64,000 bases of DNA from Malacoraja senta (GCA_038087875.1 CM075986.1:15872001-15936000); one strand, 5' to 3'; numbered from the stretch's first letter, positions 1,741-64,000 are shown. Numbers and translations are program-made. Notes: generated by a model not told the origin, from the letters alone.

Positions 1741-3647
1741 AGTAAAGGATATTTAAATAAGATATTTATGTAGGGGATAGAGTTCCTGCAGATTTTCTCA
1801 GCCACAAATGGTTACTGAATGAGAGTGCACATATTCTGTTACGAGAATAGTTACACGATAGCGTGGAATTAAGATGTGTGGCATCAAATGAAGTACTCAT
1901 GGGGAAAAATAGCAGCCCCGCGTTGATCTACAAGTTTCTGCATGACTAGATATGTGTTCAGAGAAGTGTTCTCTTGCTTAGCTGCAGCAATCTTGATAAA
2001 AGATCAGCAGGAATCTTGGATAAACTGGCAAAATTCTCAAAGCTGAACAGAAAGGTTCCCCTGAAAATCGTAGCATTAAATAATTCAGTGGTGTCTTTTA
2101 CACAAGAGGATCGGCAAAGCACTTTCAATTTTTATTACTAACTCTAATGAAATGAATAACCAGTGGCAAAATCCAAGCTGACTCAAGCAAACGGGTGCTC
2201 GGTCTTACTTATCTGCAAATTTTTACTTTGCATTGGTGTCATGCCGGTCCTGATTCCACGTTTAGACAATTGGCAATGAAACTGGGGAGCATGAAGCTGA
2301 ACCATTTAAAATCCTAGATTGATACAGCACAGGAGGGCCATTCAGCCCCTGACCTATACCTATTGTTCAGTAGTTAACTACTAAAACCCTCTCCCTATAA
2401 CTGTATATATTTTCTCCTTTAAATATTTAACCAGTTTTGCTTCTGCTTCCAGCGATCTTTTAATGTGTTCCAGATTATATTCATTGCATTTCTTGTTTTA
2501 AAATAAGTTTCCTCAAGTTGTCCCTGCTTCTTCTGACCAACATAAGTTTGTTTTCTCTGGTTAATGAAGCGTCTGACGTCTCTCCATATTTACTCTGTTA
2601 ACACTGTTCATAACTTAGAGCACCTTAATCCAGTCTCCTCATACCTTCGCTGCCTTTAAACAGAAATTCCCAGCTTTTCCAAGTTTTTCACATCATGTCC
2701 ATTCAGTTAAGTCCTCACACTGACGCTGCTGCGGTACAATTAAAATGAAGTGAAGGACGTGATTGCAGACAGGAGGAAACGATGGAAGGCTGCCCTCTTT
2801 TGGTGGACAAGCGATTTACTGGTTTTACTGGTTTATTATTTTTGTCACGTGTACCGAGATAGTGATATTATTCAGGCAAATCATATCATACGTGAATGCT
2901 TCAGGGAGTGCAAATGCGAAAGTAAACTGAGCACAGAATATAGTATTGCAGCTGCAGAGAAAATGCAGATTAAAAATGTGCCAGGATCACAACGTGGTAG
3001 ATTGGAAGATCGGCGGAATAATCAGGATGCGAATGGTCCTTGATGTTGTTGTCTGCTTTCCCAAGGCAGTGAAGTTTAGGTGGAGTAGTTGTAGGGGGAA
3101 GGCTTGTGTGATGGACTAGGCTACATTCACAACACTGCAATTTCTTTGCGGTCTTCTGCAGAGCAGTTGCCAAACCTGTGCTTTAAATTGCTTCTTTCTG
3201 AATTTACTAGAAATGCCTTGATAATTCTGGAAGGTCATTGCCTTGAAAGCCTAAGTCTACAAAGATGCTGTCTGGTCTGCTGAACATTTCTAGCATTATC
3301 TGCTTTTATATCAGATCTCCATTTTCTCCTATATTTTTCTTTGAGATAATTCCTAGGTTCAATGAGAGTAATATGCATGTCACTTCCAGAATCCATGCAG
3401 TGATGCCAATCCAGGGCATCAACATGTTCCCACTGTCAGGAGCATTCCCACATCCAAACCTATTGCCAAGCAATAGAAGTGATGAGTGTAGACTCATGCT
3501 GAGGGTGAGTTAAAGCCTGATGCCATCCCTGCCTGCTATTGATAAGGGTGAACGAGAGAGAATGCGAGGTAACATACTACCAGTCAAGGCAACTGTTTTG
3601 TTGAACAGATTCAATTTCCTGCTGTTAGGATGTACCTTGAAAAACAT

Positions 3648-3853: not shown

Positions 3854-4258
3854 AAACAGGAGAATTCTGTTTAGCTGGACGTGGTCGGACACATGGTGTC
3901 AGTGTAATTCTCAGAATGGTAATGAATGGAGAAGTGGTGAGTGCATAACCCTGGTCTTCAATCTGTACAGTGTTTGTGTACCACTGATGCCCATGGACTG
4001 CTGTCTCTTCCAGTCCACATTATCACTGTGGAAGCACGGAGGCACCCTTCATTCCAGCACTCTGACCAAGGTCTCAGTTCAGAGCTAGCGATTGAATTGA
4101 ATTGAATTGAATTTCTTTATTTGTCATTCAAAAACAAGTTTGAATGAAATTTCGTTGACATGCAGTCATTAGAGTAAAATAGCAACAAAACACACAATTA
4201 AACACAAACATCCTTCACAGTGACTCTCCAGGCACCTCCTCACTGTGATGGAAGGTAA

Positions 4259-4525
<267 letters not shown>

Positions 4526-7374
4526 TGAGATATGAAATTAAACTCTTGTAAAATTCTGCATTCAGCTCCACAATCTACGACACCAGCCACTGCACCAATA
4601 GCTCAGTTTAGCAGTAGGTAGAAGAGCAATTCACACCAGAAATCTTCCAGGTTAACTCCTGGTCTGTGCTGAGATATTAACTTGAACTGGCCTCATGCTC
4701 CATGAGGTACAAAGGTGGGTACAGCCAGCTGTAGGTGGTTATGGGTCAAGGTGCACATGGATTAGCAGTTCTGAGGATGTGATGCCCAACGCCAACACCT
4801 AGCTCACCAATCCGCCATAACTAATTGTGTGCATGGATGTTGGCTGCTGTAGTGAGGAACCTGCATTCACACCACCAAGATGGGACAGGAGCCAAAACAA
4901 AAACAAACAAAATCTGTTGTTGAAATGAATCATAGCCTCCAGGTCTCCAGGCTTTAAATGGTTAACTGCAGCTCTCGTCAATGACTTGCACCAACAGGTT
5001 ACGGGATTCTTGCTGCTTGAATAGTGATTTGTGAATTTTCCGCAGTGGGCATAGGTTAATGAGGTGTATGTATTTTATGTATTATATGTGAATCACTAGA
5101 TATTGTTAATAGAGCAGCTCCAGTAGTTTAGCGTTCATCTTCAGCATCTTTGCTGCTTGAGTAACTTTCTTTAGCTTACTCTTTCACTCCCAATCCACCT
5201 GCATGTTTCACAATTCCCTCCAGAAAGCATGGTTGCATGGAAAGCAAAAGGTTGTTACCAGACCCAAGGTCAGTGCCGCTCAGTAACTAATTATGGTAGA
5301 CTGTATTTGTAGCTCATCCAGTAGCTTTCCCTCCACTCATTGTTCATTGTGGAATTATGGTGGCTCGAAACAGCATTCTACATTTGCTTGTGGCCTCCCG
5401 GGCTTCTCCTGGGAACGTTTCTTTCACCAGAAGCTCTCATTTGGGATTATTATTACATTAATGCTAATTAATAGTAAAATAACACAAATGGGATATTCTC
5501 AGAGACTCCATGATAGGTGAACCTTCAGGGTCAGAATGTGCACTCCATTTCATCCAATTAGAAACCCAGTTGGGTAGATTCTGCATCGGCATGGTTTCAA
5601 GATTCTTAATCATTTCATTGATGCGTCAAAGTGTGGACAACATTCGCTCCCATCTTTGGAAGGGCGAAGGGCATGGAATGATCCCTATTTACCAACCACA
5701 AAAGGGTAAAGAGAGTGGTCAAGATATTGGGAAGAACCTGAAGTAACATTGATGATCGAGACAGATTGAAAACTTATTAAGAATGATCAGACTAGAAGCC
5801 ACTGCAAGTGATTTATTTAAAGTTCATTTTTTCACAAACTGGATTGTTAGCAAGGCCTACATTTATTCCTGACGATAAGCCATCTTCATAAACAGTTGAA
5901 GATGGTCTGGGGGTTGCAGTTCTAGGATTTAGACCCAGCAGCGATAAAGGATTAATGATAGATTTTGAAATCTGTATGGCGATCTGAAGGTGGTGGTTGT
6001 TCCCAGGTGCTTGCTTTAGGAGGTACAACCAGGGAAGTGGGAAATATTTCAGAGCAGTTCATCTTATCCATGAACCTGTCCAAATGTCTTTTAAACATTG
6101 TAATTGTACCTGCCTCTACAGATTCCTCTGGCAGCTCCTTCATATACCCACCATTCTCTGTGCAAAAAAACTCCACCTCGGGTTCCCTTTAAATCGTGCC
6201 GTTCTCGGCTTAAACCTATGCACTTTTGTTTACCTGTTTACCTTGAGAATAGGATTGTGACCACCCACCTTACTTTGAACACTCAACCTTGTTTCATTTG
6301 GCACAACTGTATCAAAAATCTGCCAAACTTTTTCAAAACGCCTATCTGGATTTTGTAATTTGAAGTTGTAATGTTTGATTCACCTGCAATGAATGAAATT
6401 CAACTGTTAAATAAATAGTTGTAAACTATTTTATTTAATATTGTGAATCACTTGACTTGGAAATATAATGCCACGGAATGTCAAGTGTAAGTGATCAAAC
6501 ACTCCCTTGTTAAAAATGCAATTGCTTGACACTTTAAGCCACAACTGTAAATTGAGACTGATCATTTCATGTTGTCAAAGTGTTGCCGCTATTGACTGCT
6601 TTGTTTTCAGAGGTTGAGTGGAATTGTATAATCATTAGCCCACTTATGACCCCATTATGGAAGACAAGCTCTTTGATGAAGCCGTGTAGGTTGAGCCTGT
6701 GGCATTGATCTAAGATACTCCTGAAATTAGGTTGTGGGCCTGGAATTATCAACTTCCAATAGCCTTCTTTGTGCAAAGTATGACTCCAACCATTGGCGTC
6801 AACCCCTTGATGCCCACTGACCTGAGATTTACTAGGACTCATTAATGCTACACTTGGTAAAATGTTCCCTTGATGTCACCTATGATACGATACAATAAAA
6901 CTTTATTCATCCCTGGAGGGAAATTGGGTCTCCCGACAGTCACAACACACAAAGTACACAAAAATGTGAAACTTGACATCCCAACTCAGCATCAGTAAGC
7001 AGGTTATTGGAGAGGAAGTGCTGTGCTTTAATGCAACAACACTTTCCATCAACTTGCTGGTGGAGAGTTGGCTGATTGGGCAGTAATTAGTTGCTTCGAT
7101 TTGTCCAATTTTCCACATCATTAGCTGGCTGCTGGAGATTCCATGTTACAAATGCTGGATGTGTTAAATCAAAATTCCCTCTGCTTCATGCCCTGCAAAA
7201 CCTCGGGTAGGAAAGAGTAGCCAGTCTTTATAACTCTTTGCTTGTGCTGCTGCAATGGGGTGAGCTCACTGCCACATGTGCCAGTGCTGACAACTTGCAA
7301 CGAGACAAGAAGGGAGGTATAGATAATGGACATCCCCTTGCTAGCTTGGTTTACCAATTGGATTTTGATTGTAA

Positions 7375-7578
<204 letters not shown>

Positions 7579-8898
7579 CCACGGCAGCATTGCTGGGGGA
7601 AGGAGCAGGTGGCTAGCAGCTAACCAAGCGGGAAGCACTGGCACCTCGCCTCTCTTTAACAAGGGGCACAGCAGCTGCGATTCGTTAATTTGCTTTAAAT
7701 AGCGTGTAATTTAGGGGCCATTGCTAACACGAGGGAAGGATTGCTGTTATTATTGTGGGTAGCGACATCATAAAAAAGGTCATGGGGAGGTAGTTACACA
7801 AACAACCAACGGATGTCTCGGTTTATAGCACCCATCCAGGAGTATCTAAACCTGTCCATGGACAACGGCAGGCCACTGGCCGAGGCATGCTCTGTTCATT
7901 GAAATCCCTGGTATTAACAATTATTCCATCTATTTAATAACGGAGGAAAATTGAAATGAAAGTAAAACTGGAACAGGGTCGCCAGAATTCCCCGGCCTGA
8001 TAACTTGTACATAACTGTAGTGCTACTTTAACCAGAGCAATTCTTCCCTCATTACACATTGCTATATCTTTGGATAGATAACCCACCCCAGTGGGAACAG
8101 TTTGCAACTGCACAGAATACTCTCAACGATATATCTCTTTAAAAAGGATGGTATGATGCAGCAGTCTGGTTATGCCAGATATTATAACTGTGCTTTATAG
8201 AAAAGACACAGTGCCAGTTACGCATCAGTTGTGACTGAATTATCTGCTACAGGATTCAGCAGAACCTTAAAAATCATAGTGCATCACCTGTACACCTTGC
8301 TACGTTGTACACTTCTCTCACTATCCAGAAGCCTACAACCCAACATAACTGTCCAGATCACTTCTCTGGAGCAGTTCCTTCTAGAGATAGAGCAGATCTG
8401 CAAGTGATTTCAACTTGGTGCCTTGAGCATTTTGTAGTCAGATATTTTAATCAGCAAATTGGACTGCAGTTCCACTGCAGACCCTTGCCTCATGCACCTC
8501 TCTTCTCACACACATACCCCCAACCTGTAGCTGTTTCAGAGAACATGCACCCCAGCTGTGAAGAGAGCCCTGTTACAGTGACCAGTTACCCTCCCCCATG
8601 AGTTATTGTCTACCTTGTCTCCCATCCTGGTGCTCTGCTAACCACTAGTTACCATGATGCAGGTCACTGCTGCTGCAAGTAAGAACTTAATTGTTCCGTT
8701 TCGGTACATATGACAATAGAACACTCTTGACTCTTGCTGCTCCATCTACCCACTGCATACTATGACTCGGCTCCGGAATGAAACATTTATCTCTATACAG
8801 AAAACAGACCTTCCCCATCACCACCCCCCACCCCCCTCCACTCTATCTCTACCACCCATTTCCATTTAATTGCTGGTTGAATAACCAAGGATTTTAAT

Positions 8899-8992
8899 CA
8901 GTCTGAAGAAGGGGTTTGACCTGAAACGTCCCCCATTCCTTCTCTCCAGAGATGCTGCCTGTCCCGCTGAGTTACTCCAGCATTTTATGTCT
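8899..8992 (+). mobile_element. Short Penelope-terminus insertion with hammerhead-like core; 15-bp flanking direct repeat
   Basis: accaaggattttaat at 8884-8898 and 8993-9007; CTGAAGA at 8903-8909, then GAAACGTC. Confidence 0.85.
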
Positions 8993-9305
8993 ACCAAGGA
9001 TTTTAATTGTCAGATTTAGTGATGGCTGTGTCATTTTCCCCAGCTTGGACTGTTTTTATAAAGCGAGCATGTGACTGAAGTGCGTGGGATTTCAGTTGTG
9101 TTAATTATCACAATGTGATATCACTGAATTTCAGGGGCATCCTGAATCACAGGCTCAGCAGATGGAATGCATTTTTTCAACTTAAACTGTGCTTCAGTAA
9201 TGAGTTACATATGAAGAATAATATTTTGGTACTTAAATGTTTACTGTTTGTGAGCCATTGCATTTTACATTACAGTTAATGAGTCATGGATCATTTCTGG
9301 GTTTC

Positions 9306-9311
9306 AATAAA
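9306..9311 (+). terminator. Probable polyadenylation signal of the LIMD2-type gene (3' UTR about 7579-9330)
   Basis: AATAAA after an AU-rich tract, with a T/GT-rich region downstream. Confidence 0.5.
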
Positions 9312-12300
9312 AACAAAATCACTGGTCTTTTATAAACAGTTGCTATGTGGCCAAGATTAGCAAACCATCTTAAAAATGCTCACGTCACTCTCCTCCATAC
9401 TAAAGATTGAAATGACTACTACTGAAGCCAAAGGACAGTGTGCTAGACCTGGACCAATGTCACTGTGATTAACAGATGTCCTGCGCTTCATGCATTCAGC
9501 AAAATGGTGACAGTGTAGCACTCATTAACACTGCCTCACTGTTCCAAGGACCCAGGATCCATCCTGGTCTGCAAAGTTTGTAAGTTTCCTCTAGTTCTCA
9601 TGCATATCCCACAGATGTGATGGTACATTAATTCATTATACTATATTCCCACTTTGTCTAAGTTTAAGACAAAACAAGAATCAAAGGCGAGAGTATACGT
9701 TGCACAGACAAATGAGAGGGGGAATGGGGATTTGTTTCCATGGCAGTTGGCCTGGACCAAATGACCTCCTCCTAATCAAAACAAGATCTCAATCATTCTC
9801 CAGTTCAGCAGCAGGCAAGACAATCAACACATGCCCTTCATAGATGTGGACTAGGAACTGGCCCAGATGACTTACACACTTCCATTTTCGTGGAAGTCTA
9901 GTGGCCCTTGCACTCTCATCCACCTCCCCTCCCCTTTCCCATAACTTCAAATTGCCGTCTATTTTGTGATATACGTTGCGATTCGAATGCCTGGGTATAT
10001 GCAGTGTAGATGGCATTAATGGATTGCTGGAAGCAATAGGGTGGCCGCTGGAATGAGTCAAGGTCCAAAACAATGGCAAGGTCACCATGTAGACATTATC
10101 ATCCACTATTTTCGTCTACTGCTTGCAGATGGTCAGCTTTGTATCTGAAACTTCACTTTTTGCCTGTGAACCAAGGACAATGAGAATTTCCACACTGGCT
10201 TAGCATTATGCCCATTTCCAAAGCTGTAGTTATATTTCAACCACTTTTAAAGGGGAGTGCGGGGCATTCCATATTCATGTTGTTCAGCTTCCCTTATTCA
10301 TGATTTCATGAGGATCGTACCAAAGGGAGATACTTGATTTCAGAGCTCAGGTTGAAAAACAATCAAATCCCCACAGGATTTCTATTTTGACCCATTTTCA
10401 TCTCAGACAATGGGGTGGATTAATTGCCTTGATGAGGCTGGTGTGTTCTGCATTCCCATCACCTGGCCCAAGTTCTTAAAACTCACAGTTCTACTTTCAT
10501 TGGACCGAAGTGATCCTGTTGCACCTCACAACGCCATCATTGATGTGCAGTCACATCTACTATCATCCATAAGGAAGTGACTATACAACCAGAGCCTTAA
10601 AAGTTCTTCCATACCACAACTTCTCCATGAAATAAATAGAAAATGCTGGACACACTCCTAATCAGACAGCATCGGTGGAAAGAGAACACAGAATTTTTAG
10701 TTGACATCAAAGACAATTGCTGTGCAGAATGGCAATCGAACACTCAATATCCACTACTCCTCACCTCCAAACCATCGTTGATTATGTGTATTCTGTGCAT
10801 CTGCGAGCTAAACACTCTCAGGTAAAACAATAGGGAGATAACAGGTAGTCATTCAGTCCCAGACCCGTTCTGCCATTGTAACATTATGGCTAGTTTGTAT
10901 AATAACTCAAATTTGCCTGTCTTCTCCATATTCCCTGAATGCTCTTAAGGTAATTGAAATTCTTTGATCTCAGGCTTGAAAATGTCAATGCCCCTTCATT
11001 TATGTCCCTTTTGTGGTGCTGAACTCCATCACTTCTTCTGCAAACATTTTTGCCTGATTTTACTCTAAACTGGCCCGTTACTAATTTTAAAGTTTACACG
11101 CTTGTTCTAGTTTCCCCACCAGATTTTCTCCCCGCCCAATAAAATACTCACCCTAAACTCAAACTCCTCTCACCAACTTGATGAGAAATGAAGTGTTTTT
11201 GCAGATTAAGATCAATGCAACCTGAAAACTGAGGTTTTTAAAAGTGTGATGTTATTTTGAAGAAAATCTTTACTGCATGCGTAAATCTGTGATCAGCATT
11301 TCGGGACTTGGTGGTATATGATGTTTCCCCAAAGTGAAAAATGTTGAGTGCTGTTTTGTAATGGTTGCATGAATTTATTATATTGGTGGTTCTTGTTGTT
11401 TAGACACTTTGTTCTCAACAATGGGATAAGTGGGTCTGGATCCCCCACTAACTACCCAGTTATATTGGATCTAATCAATATTGAAATTGGAAATTATTAA
11501 ATACAATAACCGCAGCTACACAGCTCAGTTACAGATATGCTGGCCTTTGCCTAGTACATCGCATAAATGAATTGCTAAGATAGAGTAATGATCTCCAAAC
11601 CCTCATGGGTGGGGCCTCAGAGTTGCCAAGATGGTACAGAAAACTTGCACAATGATCAATACTGCATGTTGATGTTAAACAAGGAAGAGATGGGGCTTGG
11701 CTTGATGGCCAAACAACCTGCAAGATGATTGTATTACTTACCTACTTAAGAACAGCCACAATAAACTGAGGTTCTTGATTCATGTGCAATTGCAGTTAAC
11801 CTTTTCAGGAGGAGGGAAAGATGAGAAAATACAATCATTTTCAGGTATTTGCTGATCGCACAATATTCGATCATGGTCAGAAAGAAACAGGCAATTTGCT
11901 CCAAGGCTTAGGTTTCAGACTGCAGTGATCTGGGGATTACTTACCAAACAACTTATGAAACAACCCTACATTATATACTTTGAATGTGAAGGCCTATTGC
12001 ATTTGGCCTGCACCAAGTATTAGTGGGCCACCATACACTGCATATTGAACTAATTCCACGTGATATACGGGTCTAAGTTTGTTAGTACGCATTGCACACA
12101 TTACTGTGAATTATATATTAGAGACACAAAATGTGATTAGAGACTGTAGTTTACAATCAGAGTCTGAACACATCTTGCTCTGTACATCAGTTATATATGG
12201 TTGTCACAATCGCCTCTTCTACTTGCAAATGTTTTGTTCTAACTTAATACATTTACATGTAAAACAATTCACTGCCTTTTTGGTCACTCTGTATTCCACA

Positions 12301-13445
12301 AACTCTCCTGAAGGAAGCTGTCACTGGCAGGTTACTGCATTTACTATATTTTTTACACAGTAGATATGCCCCCAATATACATGCCTTATAAATATTGTAT
12401 GTTTGTATCTTTTTTACTGTTTGTATATCTCTGATCACGACTGTTAAAAGTGCTGCTTTGAATCTGTGAATGCACCTCTGCTTTACAAATGTTAGAGTTT
12501 TAACATTAAATATCCATTGTGTAACCCTGTGTGCAAGATGCTACAAAATAAGGGGGGGGGGGGAGGGGGGCAGTGGTGAAAAGGTAAGACTCTCCACACC
12601 TTCCTTGATTTCTTTAATGTTCATTAGATGGTATCAATGTCCATAGAAAGATCAGTTGCCCAGAATATATATTTACATTTATGGTTCATTAGAGGCTAAT
12701 ATGAGATTCCAGAAGTGGTTTATAGTACTGATCCATTAATTAAACATAATATCAGAAACAGTGCTTAGTAAGCATTGGCTCCATGTCAGTAGAGAGACAC
12801 ACAGAGAAGGAACATTTAAAACAGAGTCCATTCAACTCCTGATCTGCCATTCCTTTGAATTATGAACGATTGACAACCTCATTTAGCTAAATTAGTCCAT
12901 AACCATTACCAATAAAAAAAAATGCTAAATCTGTATCTTTTTTAGGAGAGAATTCCATATTTATTTTTCTTTGTGAAGCCTACCCTTGTAGTCCTCATCA
13001 TATTAGGAAATAGATTTAATTTACTATTAGTTTATTATTTTTAACATTTTGTTCATATTACTCCATTACTTTCTATAAAGCATTTTACACCAAAACCATT
13101 TAAGCATGGTCATACATTTTTATTATGAATACTTTGTGTGTCTTATACACAGGGGTGGAACCAACATAGGTATACCCAACAGCTTGGAAGCTGCTGCAAC
13201 GCTATGATATAATGACCTTTGAAAATCAGTGGAGTAATCAATGGAAAAAGGACACCAAGTGCTAGGGTGCAGCAGCATCTCTGGAGAACATGGATAGGCG
13301 ACCCTTCAGGTCGGGACCCTCTGCAGACATAGTAATTCTAATTAGGAATGGACCTGCTTCATCATCCAAAGACTGCACTCAAATAAACTATTAATCCTGA
13401 CTTTGCCTGTTTCAGATGAGAGTGGTTGGTTAATGTTCAGAGGAA

Positions 13446-16260: not shown

Positions 16261-16460
16261 NNNNNNNNNNNNNNNNNNNNNNNNNNNNNNNNNNNNNNNN
16301 NNNNNNNNNNNNNNNNNNNNNNNNNNNNNNNNNNNNNNNNNNNNNNNNNNNNNNNNNNNNNNNNNNNNNNNNNNNNNNNNNNNNNNNNNNNNNNNNNNNN
16401 NNNNNNNNNNNNNNNNNNNNNNNNNNNNNNNNNNNNNNNNNNNNNNNNNNNNNNNNNNNN
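16261..16460. other. Assembly gap (200 N)
   Basis: Run of exactly 200 N, typical of a fixed-size scaffold join. Confidence 0.99.
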
Positions 16461-23010: not shown

Positions 23011-24425
23011 TAATCAAATAAGAACGTGGAATGCTTTGTGACCTAAGCTCAGCCAGGGCCAGGATGCTGATATCTAAATATGTCTGGGATGGTGAAGGGA
23101 AGAAACTGCTAGGGTAAATTAGGGTTCAGTAATTGAGTGTCTACATCAGACAGAACCCAGCTATAAAGCCCCCACTGTAAAGTGTAGAAATATTCAATTG
23201 CTAGTGTTATGGGTGAGATCAGAACCATGCAATTACTTTCTGATTGCGCTATGAAAGAAGTAGTGAAGAAAAGGTGAACTGAACACCCTCTCTTTATGGC
23301 AATGTTGCACTTAACTACTTTGAAACCTACATACATGCTGCCTTTTGAAGGGGCAGACTTTTGCATTCCAAAGCTAGGACTGATACCACATTTGCCAACC
23401 TAAATTGCTTTTGCTTTGTACTGTTGCAGTGATTTTGGTTCAAGCTACACTGGTCAAAATAAATTTGGATAACACTGAAAAAATGAATTGCTGTTGTATT
23501 TCTGGGACAAATTTTTTTAGGCTGGACGTCGATGGAGTCAACTGGGAATAGGCTATTCTAAATTTGGTAATATGCAATGAAAATGGATTAGTTATTAAAC
23601 TTGTTGTGCAGTGTCATGTAGGAGAGAGTAACCATTATGGTACAAGACTTAGTCATGTGCCCTCAACCTCTGCAATTGGACTAATTGTAGGTGGGGGAGG
23701 GGGAGGAAGAAAGCTGGAAGAGGGGTGGTGAGGGACTTTCTTCAACCCCACACTCAGTCTGAAGAAGGGTCTCGACCCAAAACTATGTTCTCCAGAGATG
23801 CTGCGTACCCAGCACTTTGTCCTTTGCTGTAGTACCCAGCATCTGGAGTTCCTTATTTGTACTGCCTGCCACCGATGTTCGGCTCGCCTGTCAACAAGGA
23901 AGAGGGGAAGTACATTTGTCATCCTCTAGTCATCCTCACTTGCGACAAACGGAAAGGTAAAATCTCAGCCAGAATGCCAGCACTCTTCCTGGCCCTCCCA
24001 CAGCAGCCTGGGATAAATTTCATCCAGCCCCGTTTGTTTACCTTTTATGCCCACTAAAGCATTGTGTATCTCTCTTTATTATTGGAGATGTGCAATAGAA
24101 TTTCACCACCTTTTTCACTGTTCTCCAACTACAAAGTTTGTTCCCTTTCTAAATGAAAAACATTTATTTAGGATTTTGCGTATATCTCTGGCTTCATGCC
24201 AGTTGCTCCTGTTATCACTAATGGGCTTTACTCTTTCCCTAAGTATTCTTTTTATCCTTCATATACGTAGTGCTAGCAGTTTTAAAGAATGGTTAAGGTG
24301 GATAATCCCCACGGTCTGACCAAGTGTATCTTCGAACATTATGGGACGCTAGGGCAGAAATTGGATCCCTGGCAGAGAGATTTGCATTGTGCAATTTTTT
24401 CTATAGAACAAAACTGAGTTTGTGA

Positions 24426-34768: not shown

Positions 34769-34809
34769 AATGATGTTCGAATAAAGTTTGAACATAATGG
34801 CGAAAGAAG
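34769..34809 (+). CDS. MAP3K3: MAP3K3-type coding exon 3 (NDVRIKFEHNGERR), start of PB1 domain
   Basis: ttgcag acceptor and gtatgt donor; 41 nt; matches SDVRIKFEHNGERR. Confidence 0.92.
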
Positions 34810-36331: not shown

Positions 36332-37175
36332 TTTGGCACGTCTCAAGATGTGTTAATGGTTGCATGAGTTCTGAGCTTAGAATATTCTACAAAATAGATT
36401 TTCTAAGCTGCCTTCCACAAATTTGCAACATTGATTTCAACAGACCTTTTTAGGGGCTCCATCCTTTTGCTGAGGTGACAATGTATTTTATGTTTTCCAG
36501 AATTTTATTAATTCCGGTTAACCTTTTACTCAATTTTTCTGGAGTATTCAAGTTACAAATATCTAAAATCTATTGTGCTCTGAAAGTATTCAGTAATGGA
36601 TGCTACACTATCCTTTTGTGTTACAAACTCCAAAGGCTCGCCCCATTCTGAGTGAAGAAATTGTATCTTCGGTCCTGAATGGTCAATCCTTTAATTTTAG
36701 ACTGATCTCTGTCTAGACACCCCAGCTGGAGGAAGCATCATTTCTGCCTCCAACCTCGAGCAATTTGAGATCATCTTTCATTCTTCTGAACTCAAATGAG
36801 CTTAGACCCAGTCTATTTAATCACTCTTAAGACATACTCACCATATCAAGAATCAGTCTGGTAAACCTGTGGTGCACTTTCTTAATTGCAAGTCTATCCT
36901 TCCTTGAGTTGCGAGACCAGTCCTGTATACACAAGAAACTGCAGATGCTGGAATCGTGAGCAAAACGCCAAGTACTGGAAGAACTCAGCAGGTCAGGGCG
37001 CATCTATTGAGGGAATGGACAGACAATATTTAGGGACTGGACCCTTCAGGTGACCTGTAACCAATATTCCAGATACATTTTCACCTAGGATCTATAGCAA
37101 AATATCTTTATTCTTGTATTTTAAAAATGAAGACCGTCCGCATTGTAGAGAGCATACAGAGTTAAAACCTGGGTT

Positions 37176-37311
37176 CTTCTTCTTTCATGTGGCGTACACA
37201 GCCTAAAGTTGTTGGACAACTTGTTCTATTTGATCTTCCGTTTGTGCACGTCGAGTTGATTGCATTAGTCGAAACAGGGCGGACCACGTGAAGGTTGCAA
37301 TCTTCCACCCC
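37176..37311 (-). mobile_element. 136-bp SINE-like retroposon with (GAA)n tail and 12-bp TSD
   Basis: aaaacctgggtt at 37164-37175 and 37312-37323; the minus strand ends ...cgccacatgaaagaagaag. Confidence 0.85.
37258..37311 (-). ncRNA. HDV-like (CPEB3-type) self-cleaving ribozyme, minimal P4
   Basis: GGGGUGG-AA-GAUUGCA-ACC-UUCACGU-GGU-CCGCCCU-GU-UUCGA-CUAA-UGCAAUC: P1 7 bp with G1.U wobble, P2 7 bp, P3 3 bp, catalytic-position C at 37268. Confidence 0.82.
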
Positions 37312-39551
37312 AAAACCTGGGTTAATGAATCACTACCATGAGCGATCAGTGTCCCTAGACATGAACCTGCCCCCTTCTCATTCATGCAATGAAACTCATT
37401 CCGATTAAAAAGCCTTCTGTTTGCCTTTGTACCGTTTTCCCTGCTCTGATTCTAATAAGAGTTTAATGTCTGACAGACTCTGGTTGTCAATATTCATTTT
37501 GCAACCTGATTTATTTGGACATTAATCCCAAACTGATTCAAATTAAGATAGTCCCAATATTGATGGCAGTGTCTTGTGAAACAAAACTCAAGCACCAGTC
37601 TCTGAGCCTTGTTCACTTTTCTGATTGTTTGCCCCAGGCCAGGTAATAATCTAGAAATTTTGAAACTTCGCTGTTCTGCTTTATAATTTGGATCTCATCA
37701 ACTTAGAGCCATGGCTATCAGCGTCTACATACCACAGCTGAAAAACATGCACTGCACTGTCCTGCCCTGCTTTATTTAAATTAATCATTTTGATTTCCCC
37801 TGTTTTACCCTTATCTCAACAAAATTCCTACACTGTATTCCTAAGCTACACTCAGAGGGTACCGTGCTTTTTAAAATAACTTTTCATTGGATTGGATGTG
37901 TCCTTAAATTACTTTCCAGTATATCATTCTTTCCGTGACATGAATTCAATGAACCATGTCTAGCTGGTTCCCAAATTACCTGGGAGTCTAAGTTTACTTG
38001 TTTACCACTTCAATCAAAAAGTATGTGGTTGTCAAATTCCACACTAAAGTCAATAAATGCTTTATGAAAATAAACTTTTCAAAATCTACACTATGTATGC
38101 TGCACTTTGAAAGACCATGCTAAAAATATACACTATTCTTTTGATGGTGCATTTCCAAATGCAACTATCCTCTGTTCATTAATGAGGTCTCTCATCCCTG
38201 GAATATCCTGGTAGCTCATTTCTGTAACTGTAACTGCTGATGCTTTACAGCTGAAAAAAAACAGAAAATGCTGGAAATATTCATAAAATAAGTTCTGATA
38301 TTTTATCAACTTGAAGCATTAACACTTTCTCTCTCAGCGACATCTGCATGATCATCCCGAGTGTTTACTGTTTTAAATCACCTCAGCATCCATTTTAAGG
38401 CATTTACTAATGTGATGCTCTGAACTGTCCATAATATAACAAATGAAATAGAAACCGTGAGAGCAAAGTTCTAATGTGGTTTTTTTTGCTTTTGTATTCA
38501 GTTCTTTTAATTATGAATAGCAGTAAACTGGAAGGTTTATTTATTATTTTATGAATGCCATCTTTTCAAATATTTTTTTATCCAAGAATTATCTGTTTAT
38601 TCTGCCTGAACTAACCGTTGAGCCTTCCTGAGGTGTCGTGGGCCTAACTCAACGAAACGCCAGTGAAGGGAGGTGCCCACTTGATATCCCCAATTATATG
38701 CATCTACACAATCGTTTTTTTAAATGTGCTTGTTAACTTGTAGGTAACTGATTATTGCATAAGTTTGTATAATCAGTTTAGATAGTGCTTTGGGCTTGGC
38801 TTTCTTGGTTGTTCACTTATGCTGGTGTTATAGCACAAGTACTTTGTGTTTTCATTGTAATTTGATGGGGAGGAGAAATGCAAGCCATTTATTGTTATTT
38901 TTTTTTAATAGTGTAAATACATATTTTGCTTGTTCAAGGATTTTTGAGAGCACAACAGATCTTCATAACAGGATTAGAGTTATAGAGCTCCGCAACATGG
39001 AAACAGCCTCTTTGGACAAACCTGTCCATGCTGATCAAGTTGGCATTTTGAGCTAATCCCATTTGCCTGCATTTTGGCCCATATCCCTTTAGACTCTTGT
39101 TTATTATATGATATTATTTACACAAAATACATTATAATCAAAATCCATTATAAAGAGGTCCATTAAAACGAGGGTTTACTAATGTAAATGTCATTATTAC
39201 CCTGCTAATTGCACTTAGTATTGCTGCATGCTGTAATTTCAACCATTGTGAAATATTGGTCTCCCTTGTATTTTACTGAGCGCTTTGCTTTATGTTGCAC
39301 AGAACTTGAGTTTGATAATCACACTAAGTAGATAGACCTCAGAAATATATTAGCCTGCCTTGGGCTAGGATATAAATCTTAGTGTAAAACATTTCAGCAT
39401 TGAATGGGATTAGGTGAATCCTATGATTCTTTGTTATGGCTTAAGAGAACGTTGACAATGGAAATAAAACAACCAGTGCGAAGTTAATGCCCATGACTTC
39501 ATCACAAAGCTGAAGGCTCTGAACTGAGGTGCAGAGCGTACTTAACAATAA

Positions 39552-43480: not shown

Positions 43481-43580
43481 AATCATACAATTCAGCCGTC
43501 CAGTCAAATATGAGGAACTGCACCAAAAAGTCAAATCAGTATTTGGGCAGCTAATGGACTTAAACTACACGAACAATGAG
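43481..43580 (+). CDS. MAP3K3: MAP3K3-type coding exon 4 ([33 protein letters not shown]), PB1 domain
   Basis: cttctcag acceptor and gtaatt donor; 100 nt; matches [33 protein letters not shown]. Confidence 0.92.
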
Positions 43581-45304
43581 GTAATTCCCAGCTCAAACTA
43601 CTTTTACACTTTTTAATTTCCTCAATTGAACCTAATGTCTTTGTCTGTTCATTCCTCCCCATTGTACTCTACTTTCTGGAAATGTCTCACTTCTCCAAGT
43701 TTCTGTTAAATAATTTAATTTGTGAGTGGTCTGCATGCTCTCTGAATCTTCTCTCTGGCTAGCATCTTGTCATCGGTTTCTCCTCATCACTCTCTTCCTT
43801 TTTCTTTTCTCACCCATTTTTCACTTTTTTTAAAAGATGTTATACTATTCTTTTTTTTAATAGATGTTTTAATATTCTCATTCCACAATCGGTCTCATAT
43901 GATATAACTTTTTTTTCTTTCCCAACATTCTTCATAAGATGATTTATTGTCACATACACCAATTGGTGTAGTGAAAGTGACTGCCCAGGTCAGTCATACA
44001 ATTTAAGAAAGCAACAGACTCAAATAAACACGTTTTAGCATAAACATCCATCACAGTGACTCCTACACATTCCTCACTGTGATGGAAGGCGAAAATAAAG
44101 TTCTTGAATGAGTTATTACAATCTGGCCATATGATCACTTCACCGCACGTGCTGCATTTCCTCAGAGATGCTTCTTGTACATTAATCTCCAGCCTTTGCC
44201 TCTCGTATGCAATAATTATTCTTCCTTAGTTCTGCAGTTGCAGTCTGTTTTCACGTGTCAAATGTGACTATATCTCTCCTCACAATTCATGACTCTAGGT
44301 TGTCGGCTCTATACCTCTTGCCAGTAAGAAATCCTGGACAAGTCATAGTTTCCTGCAACTTCACTTTAGCTCTTGCCCTGTTGCAAACTGTACCTTTTTG
44401 TACAAAATGTAATTCCATTCTCTCTGGCTTCTTCAGGCTTGCCCTTGAATAATACATTGGGCTTTTAACATCAAATCTGCCTCTACCAGCTGGACCATTT
44501 TCAAAGGAAAAAAACGTTCTAATTTCCAATATCTTTTAAGTTCTAAATGCATATCAGAATAATGGTTGGTGAGCTGAAAGTGACAATAGGGATGCAATAC
44601 ACTGATTCTATAACAAGGAGTGTTTAGCAGGTTATAAGAGAAGTGTTGAAACAAATGTTGATCATGAAGAGCATGGTGATCTATAATCAGTGTTGCACAG
44701 TTGAAATGAACCATATTTTAGTTGGGTTTTGATTTCAATCTGGGTTTCAACCTTGGTGGTAGCAGCTTTCAGGGCTGCTGCATGAATGGAGAAGTTCTGA
44801 ACCTATTGGCTGAATTCCACCATTGATTTTCTATCCATATTCTGTCACTGGAATCTAGTAGCAGAGTAAGAGATAGCTGGGATATTTCAGCATTTAAACC
44901 AGGGAATCTGATCATCTCTGATTCTGTGAGAAAGAAGGGTAAGGATTTTTTGTTGTTGTTGTTGTTTTTTTTTGGTTTTTTTGTAAATGTGTTGATTTAA
45001 TTGGGTGGGGTTTGACTGGCCAACCAATATCTCCATCAGGTGGATCACTTTTGAATAGAAACTTTCTAATATCCAGTATCTTTTAAGAGCCAAATACAGA
45101 TCAGAAATGTGGTCAGTGAGCTGAAAGTGACAATGAGAATGCAATACGCTAATTCTATAACAAGGAGTTTACCTTAGCTTCCCTAGTATTTCCAGGTAAA
45201 TTAAGTTCCTTACCCCCAGAATTATTTTGGTAAATTTCCTCTGCACATGATCCAAGCTGCCTTATCTTTTCTAGAGTCCAGAATATTTTGGTTGTGATCG
45301 ATCA

Positions 45305-45893
45305 AGTCATAGAGTAATACAGCACAGAAACAGGCACTTGTGCCCAACTCATCCATGCAGGCTAAAATGCTCCATCTAAGCAAGTCAAATTTGCCAGTGG
45401 TTGGTTGGCCCATTACTCTCAAAACCTTTCCTATCAATGTACCTGTCCAAATGTCTTGTAATGTTATTATTGTATCTGCCTCAACTAAGTCCGAGGGCAG
45501 CTTATTCCATATACCTACCTCTCCCTCGTCTTAAACCTCTAGTTCTTGATTCCCAACCATGGGGAAAAAGACTGAGCATTCACCCTACCATAGCGCATCA
45601 TGATTTTATATACCTCCATGAGAACATCCTCGCTGTCCTGTGGAATTTAAGTTCCAACCGACCCAACCTCTCTCTGTACCTCAGGCCCTCGAGTCTTGGC
45701 AACATACTCTAAAATCTTCTCAGCACTTTCCAATTTAATGGAGATCTTTTCTGTAGCAACATGACCAAAACTGAACATAATACTCCAAATACGACCTAAC
45801 CAATGTCTTGCACAACTGTAACATAACGTCCCAATTTCTGAACTCAATTCCCTGACTGATGAAAGCCAGCGTGCTGAAAGTCTTTACCACCGT
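45305..45893 (-). mobile_element. Degenerate CR1/HER1 fragment that resumes at 47105-47326
   Basis: Minus-strand peptide LAFISQGIEFRNWDVMLQLCKTLVRSYLEYYVQFW; HER1-type tail at about 45305-45345. Confidence 0.8.
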
Positions 45894-45896
45894 GTC

Positions 45897-46310
45897 ATCA
45901 TCATCATCGGCGGTCACTCGAAACGAGTACGACTGTCCCCTCATGGAGGACGCCTGTGCGTGACTTTGTTTAACGTGGGGAGACTGGTGCACAGACAGCC
46001 ACCACACGGTCCTTGACAGATCTGGGTCAGAATCCTGTGGCATGGAATCCAAGACGACCGGGGACCCTTTACTGCTGCAGCCTTCATCCGCCTTCCCAGC
46101 CGTTGTGACACTCCACTAAAGCCAGCCATCATCCTCCGCCTGTTCCACCGTTGAGGTCTTGGTTGGATTGCTCTTTGTCAGAGACCTCCCCCTTGACCGT
46201 ACCGCCATGGGTGGCCCTACCAGGAGCATAGCTCCAGACGGCATCGCTCTCAGGATCTCAGGATCACACAAGCTTCTCCACCATGACAAGGTGATAATCC
46301 ACGGAGAAGA
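45897..46310 (-). mobile_element. RTE (Rex3/Expander-like) short internally deleted derivative with (TGA)n tail
   Basis: (tca)n at the left end; the minus-strand 5' part caccttgtcatggtggagaagcttgtgtgatcc...ggtagggccacccatggc resembles RTE 5' UTRs. Confidence 0.6.
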
Positions 46311-62568: not shown

Positions 62569-62975
62569 GATAATAATAATAATAATAATAACTTTATTTA
62601 TAAAGCACTTTAAACAACCACAGTTGCCACAAAGTGCTGTACATGAGAAATCACGAACAAAAAGCTATTACAAACAATTAAAAACCATAAAAAACCGTAA
62701 AACGAAGGACTATAAAAAACACACTAAAAATTAAAAGACATTAAAAGCACTAAAAACAGGGGCAATGCCTCAGCCAGTGTCGAAAGCCAAAGAATAAAAA
62801 TATGTTTTTAGGGAGGATTTGAAGATGGACAGTGAGGGGGCCTGTCTGATGTGCAGCGGCAAGGTGTTCCAGAGTGCCGGAGCAGCAACAGAAAAAGCTC
62901 TATCCCCTCTGAGCTTCCGCTTAGACCTTGGTACCTCAAGGAGCAGCTGATCAGCTGACCTGAGGCACCGGGCGT
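62569..62975 (-). mobile_element. L2-type LINE 3' end with (TTA)n tail
   Basis: (ATA)n followed by ctttatttataaagcacttt...caaagtgct stem-loop; ttccagagt...gcagcaacagaaaaagctct is typical of an L2 ORF2 end. Confidence 0.65.
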
Positions 62976-63375
62976 TTATCTTTAAAGATCAGCGATCTGT
63001 ATTGCACAAATCTTTTGGCCATTGCTTGAAAGACTGCAATTGCATGTACTGTTTAAGAAATAACTTAATCCAGCACGGATTGCCAGTGACACAAGCAGAT
63101 GGGTGGGACATGGTTTAGAACCTGCCAAATCTCTTCCAAGGAGTGTTACTATTTCTGTTTTGCACATAAATAGCCTTCCTTGGGGCACGTGGGGTTGCAA
63201 ACAAACACAAAAAAATAATAATTGACTTTTTAGTCTTGTGTCCATATCTTACCTTCAGATATTCTTGGTTTAGCAGAAATAATAATCATTTCACCAGTGG
63301 TGTTTGTTAAATCGCATTAGCTGTGAGGAGGTTATAGTCCACTATCTTGTAGATAAGGTGGAAGCTATGGTGTAG

Positions 63376-64000
63376 TTGCACTGTGGAAACTACAGAGGGG
63401 TCACCCTGCTCTCTGCCTCAAGGAAAGTCATTGCCAAGGACATCCTCAACCACAAGTGTGATTTGGAGTATGAATTATATCCATCCAGGGCCATCCAATC
63501 CATACTTGCATTTGTGTTCACTCAAAGGCTGAGCTCCGAGCATCTGCAATTCATTCACTGAGTGCATAATGACCTTCCAAACAATGCATGGAAGACAAAC
63601 GGCTCTCCGTCCCCATTTCTATACAATGCAACCTTCTAATTATGGCGAGTTCCTTGAAAACATGGACCACTTGTCTTGATATGGCAGTGGCATCTCAGCT
63701 GAGACAGACATTGATGATGAAATTCATCGTTGCCTTCAAAGCACCAGTGCAGCCTTTGTCAATTGAGGGAAAAAAAGGTGCCCATAGTTCAAGACTTCAA
63801 ACCCAGATAAAGCACATGGTCTAACAGTGATTTTGTGCTTTTGAGATCTGGACTGCAGCTACTTTAAGACTTTAGAAAGATGCCACCAATACTGCCTCTG
63901 CAAATTTTCCAAATTCATTGGAAGGTTAAATGATCCAATTCCTAGGCCAAACGCCCCAGCAATGACACTCTTATTGCACTTGTGTCTTCATGACAGAACG
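63376..64000 (+). mobile_element. Degenerate RTE-clade LINE RT fragment
   Basis: CGNYRGVTLLSASRKVIAKDILN and a broken frame reading ISAETDIDDEIHRCLQSTSAAF, both typical of RTE RTs. Confidence 0.7.

Follow-up and report, generated by a model that had tools for sequence, protein, structure and literature searches.

How does a retroposon of 136 bp obtain an RNA with an exact 5′ end? The locus that raises this question lies in a 64-kb window, by which we mean the whole stretch of 64,000 nucleotides of Malacoraja senta DNA that was analyzed. HDV-like ribozymes at the 5′ ends of LINEs are an accepted means by which promoter-less retroelements define their RNA; the known cases come chiefly from insects, trypanosomes, and other invertebrates and involve full-size ribozymes. 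Here, we suggest that the locus probably represents an abundant, nonautonomous “bipartite” LINE derivative that releases itself by means of a 5′ ribozyme and is mobilized in trans. An earlier note, made from this DNA alone, had read it as a promoter-less retroposon whose 5′ end is the predicted cleavage site, and this main reading is supported by the target-site duplication (TSD), the family ends at G1, the fold of the head, and R1, a covariance model of phage ribozymes.

Inspection of the sequence places the 136-bp insert at 37176-37311 (minus strand), bracketed by exact 12-bp TSDs. On the minus strand, the 136-mer has GGGGTGG at its start and GAAAGAAGAAG at its end, and its coordinates agree letter for letter with the 136-bp insert between 12-bp direct repeats, with a (GAA)n tail, that had been described before. 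Ribozyme positions are numbered as n = 37312 − coordinate, and G1 is the first base of the element. The boundaries and the 3′ part are as follows.

37164-37175, no strand assigned: TSD copy beside the 3′ tail, aaaacctgggtt; the empty-site joint in organisms B, C, D, and E
37176-37186, minus strand: short microsatellite tail, GAAAGAAGAAG, whose length differs from copy to copy
37187-37257, minus strand: 3′ domain, from ViennaRNA folds; presumed recognition module for the reverse transcriptase of a partner
37312-37323, no strand assigned: TSD copy touching G1, aaaacctgggtt again

In organisms B, C, D, and E, contigs join 37163 to 37312, with 148 bases skipped and 12 ambiguous, and the empty site in these four related organisms holds one copy of the 12-mer. 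In organism A, the site is filled, and a contig across 37286-37411 has 0 differences. Because a TSD at the filled site is accompanied by empty sites with a single 12-mer, the 136-bp unit is a true and recent retroposition. Searches of metagenome, prokaryote-genome, and viral contigs with a pattern from the tail domain and another from the head had 0 matches, which argues against contamination. No second copy was found in the 64-kb window by blastn (word size 7) or by a 3-mismatch pattern search, and (GAA)3+ runs within the window occur in the element tail only. A search of the window for a partner LINE found neither another GAA tail nor a 3′ end that resembles that of the element.

The 3′ domain folds in ViennaRNA into an outer long-range stem (37243-37250 with 37193-37200) and an inner 7-bp hairpin (37216-37222 with 37206-37212). 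The family-majority base at 37196 changes a G.U pair of the outer stem to G-C, and the variable sites 37212-37214 form the loop of the inner hairpin. On the minus strand, a reading frame is open from the first bases of the element to a TAG ~30 nt before the tail (37207-37311; …EDQIEQVVQQL*), and this frame may be the last codons of the ORF of the parent LINE, or chance.

The host gene encodes a MAP3K2/3-type kinase and lies on the plus strand (PDB MAP3K2/MAP3K3 PB1 chains, E about 1e-9), with later kinase exons at 47.6 and 55.1-55.4 kb. Two exons delimit the intron in which the element sits.

Near 34781, plus strand: host PB1 exon; with 43482-43586, brackets the intron of the element
43482-43586, plus strand: host PB1-domain exon, matched by PDB MAP3K2 and MAP3K3 PB1 chains

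With PB1 exons on the plus strand at ~34.8 and 43.5 kb and the element on the minus strand, the antisense placement relative to MAP3K3 given in the earlier note holds. Elsewhere in the window, coding exons for LIM domains precede the kinase gene, likewise on the plus strand (4259-4525 and 7375-7575), and, by our reading of the translation, would be LIMD2-like. Possible LINE reverse-transcriptase or ORF fragments (e.g., NYRGVTLLS) occur at 63376-63558 (plus), 62773-62988 (minus), and 45738-46115 (minus); these LINE-like open stretches share no sequence with the element. Positions 16261-16460 are 200 N, an assembly gap or a masked stretch.

The element is one of a large family. Contigs of eight public runs were placed on 37076-37411, and family variation was read from summed contig depth. 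The element was covered by 4,146 to 13,435 contigs per run in six differently labeled organisms, and the flanks were single copy. On the head side, contig exits cluster at 37311, 37312, and 37313; on the tail side, they cluster at 37174/37175, where the consensus of the loose ends terminates in TTCTTC. The sequence beyond the exits is A/T-rich, and its consensus has an agreement of just 0.32-0.39, which amounts to none. Thus, clustered head-side exits together with nonagreeing flanks indicate that one 5′ end, G1, is common to the copies. Copy number and clustering of 5′ ends had been put forward earlier as checks on the family, and both came out in its favor, with thousands of contigs per run and ends clustered at G1. 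The exits at 37312 and 37313 fit with flanks that start with A, as at this copy. About half of the 5′ junctions of the copies reach one base past G1, matching the plus-strand A, and this one-base excess, being larger than base composition gives, hints at a preferred T immediately upstream of the insertion on the sense strand of the element. In organism A (run X1), ~18% of the placed contigs are at least 99% identical to this copy, a share that suggests recent activity. Altogether, these observations suggest that the family is very abundant and recently active. In organism D (run X6), the summed depth over the ribozyme half (37256-37303) is ~2x that over the tail half (37196-37231), the others being similar; this excess hints that, in organism D, the same head is also carried by further element families or by the parent LINE.

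What, then, begins at G1? The first 54 nt of the minus strand are predicted to form the following structure.

37258-37311, minus strand: minimal P4-less HDV-like ribozyme fold of theta type, 54 nt, as predicted by the descriptor, by R1, and by RF02682 at 16 bits
37305-37311, minus strand: 5′ strand of P1 (G1-G7), partner 37276-37282; positions 1-7/30-36, with a G1.U36 wobble
37296-37302, minus strand: 5′ strand of P2 (GAUUGCA), partner 37258-37264 (UGCAAUC); positions 10-16/48-54, 7/7 Watson-Crick
37283-37295, minus strand: P3 (ACC/GGU) around L3 UUCACGU; P3 at 17-19/27-29, L3 at 20-26
37265-37275, minus strand: G37 (P1.1) at 37275, linker UUUCGA, and J4/2 CUAA with C44 at 37268

The head satisfies the nested double pseudoknot order P1-P2-P3-L3-P3′-P1′-P1.1-(P4)-J4/2-P2′, with the 6-nt linker UUUCGA in the position of P4, and P1, P2, P3, L3, G37, and C44 were each found where the earlier note had put them. 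Cleavage is predicted directly 5′ of the G at 37311, i.e., at the first base of the element. In the NMR study of the CPEB3 ribozyme, U20 and G25 of L3 form the metal-site wobble and C22 is the P1.1 partner of G37 (PMC4836649); the L3 columns U20, C22, and G25 are invariant in the phage set described below. The 54-mer has P1 plus P3, and nothing else, as its nested minimum-energy fold (−12.4 to −12.6 kcal/mol), leaving both strands of P2 free for a duplex of −7.4 kcal/mol. When the upstream flank of this copy is included, P1 pairs with upstream sequence instead in the minimum-energy fold.

We assessed the fold with a generic HDV descriptor, which requires a 7-bp P1, 0-4 nt in J1/2, a P2 that is 5-8 bp long, a 3-bp P3, an L3 of 7 or 8 nt whose third base is C, a G after P1, and C-N-R-A before the 3′ strand of P2. 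This descriptor was composed after the sequence had been seen, and its uniqueness and the shuffle odds are therefore somewhat generous: over both strands of the window (128 kb) it has one start site, 37311 on the minus strand, and when the 136-mer was shuffled 300,000 times with its dinucleotides preserved, the three helices appeared in HDV order from base 1 in 35 shuffles, 3 of which also had C22, G37, and C-N-R-A. Rfam at gathering thresholds gave no family anywhere in the window. At E up to 10, the sole match was RF02682 (HDV-F-prausnitzii), which covers 37258-37311 (minus) exactly and the full model, with 16 bits vs. a threshold of 44. The HDV, CPEB3, and drz models of Rfam gave no match even at E 10, and this was the outcome of the scoring against HDV and CPEB3 covariance models that had been proposed earlier as a check. 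The HDV-type models of Rfam (RF00094, RF00622, RF02682, and others) all expect P4.

Closer relatives were found in viruses. Scanning viral contigs with the P3-L3 core of the element gave 117 loci, on which the descriptor yielded minimal ribozymes of 54-55 nt. In one of them, on phage contig L075, G1 at 2833 (minus) adjoins a tRNA-Met at 2834-2905 (minus), the placement by which theta ribozymes are recognized. The surrounding region, L075:1788-4184 (IMGVR_UViG_3300045988_091192), is a tRNA array with three theta-type ribozymes, and each G1 directly follows a tRNA 3′ end (2833, tRNA-Met; 4112, tRNA-Thr; 1844, tRNA-Gly). A second viral scan used a core pattern in which P1, P2, and J1/2 were left free. 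It gave 16 phage loci, all 16 of which have a P1, not selected for, that is 7/7 paired, and a P2 of 5-9 bp. An alignment of ten phage sequences has its four helices 97% paired with 11 pairs changed on both sides, a result reached by 0 of 500 shuffles. From these 10 phage sequences only, we built R1. On the window, R1 matches 37256-37311 (minus) over model positions 1-56 of 56 with 44.9 bits (E 1.5e-10), a score that is in part circular because the pattern behind its training set also fits the element. This circularity does not extend to the pairing registers or the helices, nor to three phage examples that neither pattern had picked, whose core identity to the element is 21/25 to 21/26. Phage ribozymes outside the training set score 42.6-54.5 bits. 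The second-best R1 match in the window (24170-24230, plus; 11 bits, E 0.34), in which the outer stem has only 4 bp and the 3′ string is similar, was judged a chance match and rejected as a theta ribozyme.

In an alignment of 22 sequences (21 phage plus the element), P1 is 100% paired, with both partners changed in six of its seven pairs, and G1.U and C22-G37 never vary; P1 and P2 covary over the phage sequences and the element. The median identity between the element and the phage ribozymes is 61%, and that between phage ribozymes is 63%. The linker-plus-junction string UUUCGACUAA is common to the element and L003:6804-6861, and the P2 core AUUGCA/UGCAAU is common to the element, L130:4154-4208, and L054. 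By these comparisons, the closest relatives found for the head are phage ribozymes of the P4-less theta HDV-like class, and not CPEB3. The label “CPEB3-like” used in the earlier note stands for the L3 and the G-U after P1, but the nearest kin found are of theta type, and the CPEB3 model of Rfam is unmatched even at E 10. Four theta ribozymes have been shown to self-cleave in a Mg2+-dependent manner, and their C-to-U mutants are dead (Kienbeck et al. 2024, PMC10879173). By sequence and predicted structure, the head thus fits a ribozyme class that is proven to cleave.

Within the family, variants were counted at shares of 3-5% or more. Non-CpG variation in the head is confined to two positions, 8 and 45, both in joiners. 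Position 8 is A in this copy and G in ~65% of summed contig depth; position 45 is U in this copy, with G at 16-40% and A at 4-15%. The C at the catalytic position, C44, is altered in 0.5-1.7% of summed contig depth. The stem changes are CpG transitions only (G32>A, turning U.G into U-A; C31>U, turning G-C into G.U), and these preserve pairing but represent ordinary CpG decay and were given no weight as support. The stems are otherwise invariant, and the family consequently yields no compensatory evidence; of the conservation and covariation among copies that had been suggested earlier as a check, the former was found and the latter was not. The invariance is compatible with constraint but is no proof of it, and pairs that never change carry no information on structure. 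The head did not have a significant deficit of non-CpG variable sites compared to the rest of the element (2/54 vs. 7/82; Fisher p = 0.32).

These data bear on the idea that a GC-rich, self-complementary 5′ end resembles an HDV-type ribozyme by accident and that the element is just a short LINE-tail retroposon. The Rfam scores, which lie under every gathering threshold, and the invariant stems, which deprive the family of internal covariation, are as this idea would have it. However, only ~1 in 100,000 shuffles fits the descriptor, which is otherwise silent in 128 kb; R1, built on phage sequences only, recovers the head; the linker and J4/2 string is common to phage ribozymes that adjoin tRNA 3′ ends; and the fold begins at the very first base of the element. 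We regard such a coincidence as very improbable. The predicted HDV-type fold of the head is far beyond chance.

How is the element transcribed? In its size of 136 bp, its copy number, and its LINE-type tail, it resembles a classical Pol III SINE with an internal promoter. By contrast, the element has no tRNA, 5S, 7SL, or snRNA match in Rfam even at E 10 and no tRNA by ARAGORN, and the best matches to an A box and a B box carry 3 mismatches each. Thus, nothing points to a Pol III head, in line with the earlier description of a promoter-less element, and a Pol III SINE is hardly credible as an explanation. In a poly(A) RNA run (X23), many reads cross the 5′ junction, both junctions are crossed, and 93% of the placed RNA continues into unrelated flanks, indicating that the family is seen mostly within other transcripts. 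The library looks stranded, and in X23 reads whose first mate lies on the plus strand are only ~0.4-0.6 times as deep as those whose first mate lies on the minus strand, so that one orientation of the element is under-represented in transcripts. Sense insertions may have been selected against, or sense RNAs that were cleaved may have been lost, cleavage and insertion bias being inseparable here. No excess of read starts at G1 (at least a fifth of molecules) was found in this single poly(A) run, a type of run that would miss 136-nt nonpolyadenylated RNA, and we count this result neither for nor against cleavage.

The lack of an RNA-end pile-up at G1 in the poly(A) run is also what one would expect if the head were a conserved LINE 5′ end that is folded but noncleaving in vivo, with G1 as a transcription start. 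On this view, the head would bind a LINE protein, shield the RNA from 5′ exonucleases, or act, like Pr77 of L1Tc, as an internal Pol II promoter. There are precedents for each role: the R2 protein binds the ribozyme pseudoknot (PMC6765202), the first 77 nt of L1Tc are both promoter and ribozyme (PMC3383444), and protection seems tied to the fold and not to activity (PMC11331408). However, G1.U, U20, C22, G25, G37, and C44 are all kept and match a class that cleaves in vitro; the continuation of 93% of the RNA into unrelated flanks is as expected for cotranscripts and not for transcription units of their own; and the protein-binding, shield, and promoter roles are all compatible with cleavage. 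We therefore consider a noncleaving head improbable, if less so than a chance resemblance.

We favor a self-released, trans-mobilized element, and we suggest that it works as follows. The element would consist of a head (37311 down to 37258, minus strand) and a tail, with no coding region. Copies in sense orientation in transcribed regions would be cotranscribed as part of a host RNA. The head would then fold as a nested double pseudoknot and cut directly 5′ of G1, yielding an element RNA with an exact 5′ end whose 5′-OH is buried in a compact fold. This fold might, in addition, make the RNA harder for 5′ exonucleases to attack; protection by an HDV-like fold at the 5′ end has been proposed (PMC11331408). 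A LINE reverse transcriptase acting in trans would recognize the 3′ hairpin and the (GAA)n tail, and target-primed reverse transcription at a new site would generate a TSD of about 12 bp. We infer cleavage, read-through RNA as the source, mobilization in trans, and the identity of the partner. Judged from its bases, the head of this copy is intact. Because this copy is antisense to the host gene, it could be a source only if the opposite strand of that gene were transcribed, and the kinase pre-mRNA would remain uncut.

Elements that derive from LINEs and begin with an HDV-like ribozyme are known. Bipartite nonautonomous LINEs and their link to 5′ ribozymes were drawn explicitly by Kojima (PMC5786205; also PMC6765202). 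The R2 SIDEs are nonautonomous and retain the 5′ HDV-like ribozyme of their LINE (PMC3414825), as does NARTc of L1Tc (PMC4035085, PMC3383444), and 5′ HDV-like ribozymes are also known from RTE and baggins elements, which lack a promoter (Ruminski et al. 2011, as summarized in PMC6765202 and PMC5786205). The present element shares with the R2 SIDEs, NARTc, RTE, and baggins elements an ORF-less head plus tail, a ribozyme at the exact 5′ end, a defined or microsatellite 3′ tail, and TSDs, and would share cotranscription and use of a LINE enzyme in trans. It differs from them in its total length of 136 bp, in its 54-nt ribozyme without P4, and in its very many copies, scattered through a vertebrate genome. 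Hammerhead SINE-like elements of schistosomes and twister-variant non-LTR elements (PMC6765202, PMC8501958) are similar in that a self-cleaving RNA frees the element RNA from a longer transcript, as we suggest here, and different in ribozyme class and cleavage geometry. Vingi is absent from the list of ribozyme-bearing clades of Kojima (PMC5786205), and our literature search found no link between Vingi and ribozymes beyond Kojima 2018. The literature search, which covered sources other than Repbase and Dfam, where an earlier entry is possible, found no paper that joins HDV-like ribozymes with skates and none that prints the core of the element. The theta-type, 136-bp vertebrate version thus appears undescribed in the papers searched.

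The full L3, UUCACGU, is presumably identical in the mammalian CPEB3 ribozyme. The two also share the numbering to residue 38, U20, C22, A23, and G25 of L3, a P1.1 of one G-C pair plus U-U, and a 4-nt J4/2 led by the catalytic C (PMC4836649). CPEB3 differs in having a full P4 hairpin and in being single copy in one intron and confined to mammals, whereas here the P4 position is a linker and the host is MAP3K2/3-like. The likeness to theta ribozymes, and to drz-Mtgn (Riccitelli et al. 2014, as cited in PMC10879173), goes further: a length of 54-56 nt without P4; a P1 of 7 bp, a P3 of 3 bp, an L3 of 7 nt, a G after P1, a 6-nt linker, and a C-U-R-A junction; and the core letters CC-UUCACGU-GG, CCUGUUU, and ACUAA, with compensating differences in P1 and P2. 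What differs is the setting. Theta and minimal HDV-like ribozymes are found to ~99% in Caudoviricetes, ~58% of theta ribozymes are placed to cleave no more than ±5 nt from a tRNA 3′ end, an association that is typical of the class without strictly defining it, and a search of eukaryotes (RefSeq “complete” genomes, human, mouse, and protists) found none (PMC10879173). In contrast to these phage tRNA arrays, the present ribozyme sits in a vertebrate nuclear retroposon with a TSD, in an intron; ARAGORN found no tRNA near the element (36900-37600), and the sequence upstream of G1 is the TSD. The proposed task also differs, being to make the 5′ end of a retroelement RNA and not to trim a tRNA 3′ trailer.

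The head and the phage theta ribozymes might be homologous and not convergent, either because the lineage moved between phages or bacteria and animals or because animal retroelements are a reservoir. We hold this idea to be unlikely, yet worth stating for its consequences. If it were true, an active theta-type ribozyme would have a second, eukaryotic role in making retroelement 5′ ends, and, in the reservoir version, animal retroelements might be the source of minimal, perhaps CPEB3-type, ribozymes.

The origin of minimal HDV-like ribozymes has been called undetermined, and the present element puts one of theta type into an animal genome, where it would have a plausible role. With a 54-nt P4-less ribozyme and an 82-nt tail, it would be a near-smallest version of the 5′ ribozyme trick. 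Small as it is, it has reached copy numbers in the thousands in several related vertebrates, and insertions are so young that species differ in them. If the head is active, it would offer a compact natural 5′-processing module for RNA-templated insertion tools and a system in which to ask whether cleavage efficiency limits the spread of a retroposon, and its thousands of decaying copies would constitute a natural library of the changes tolerated by the minimal HDV fold.
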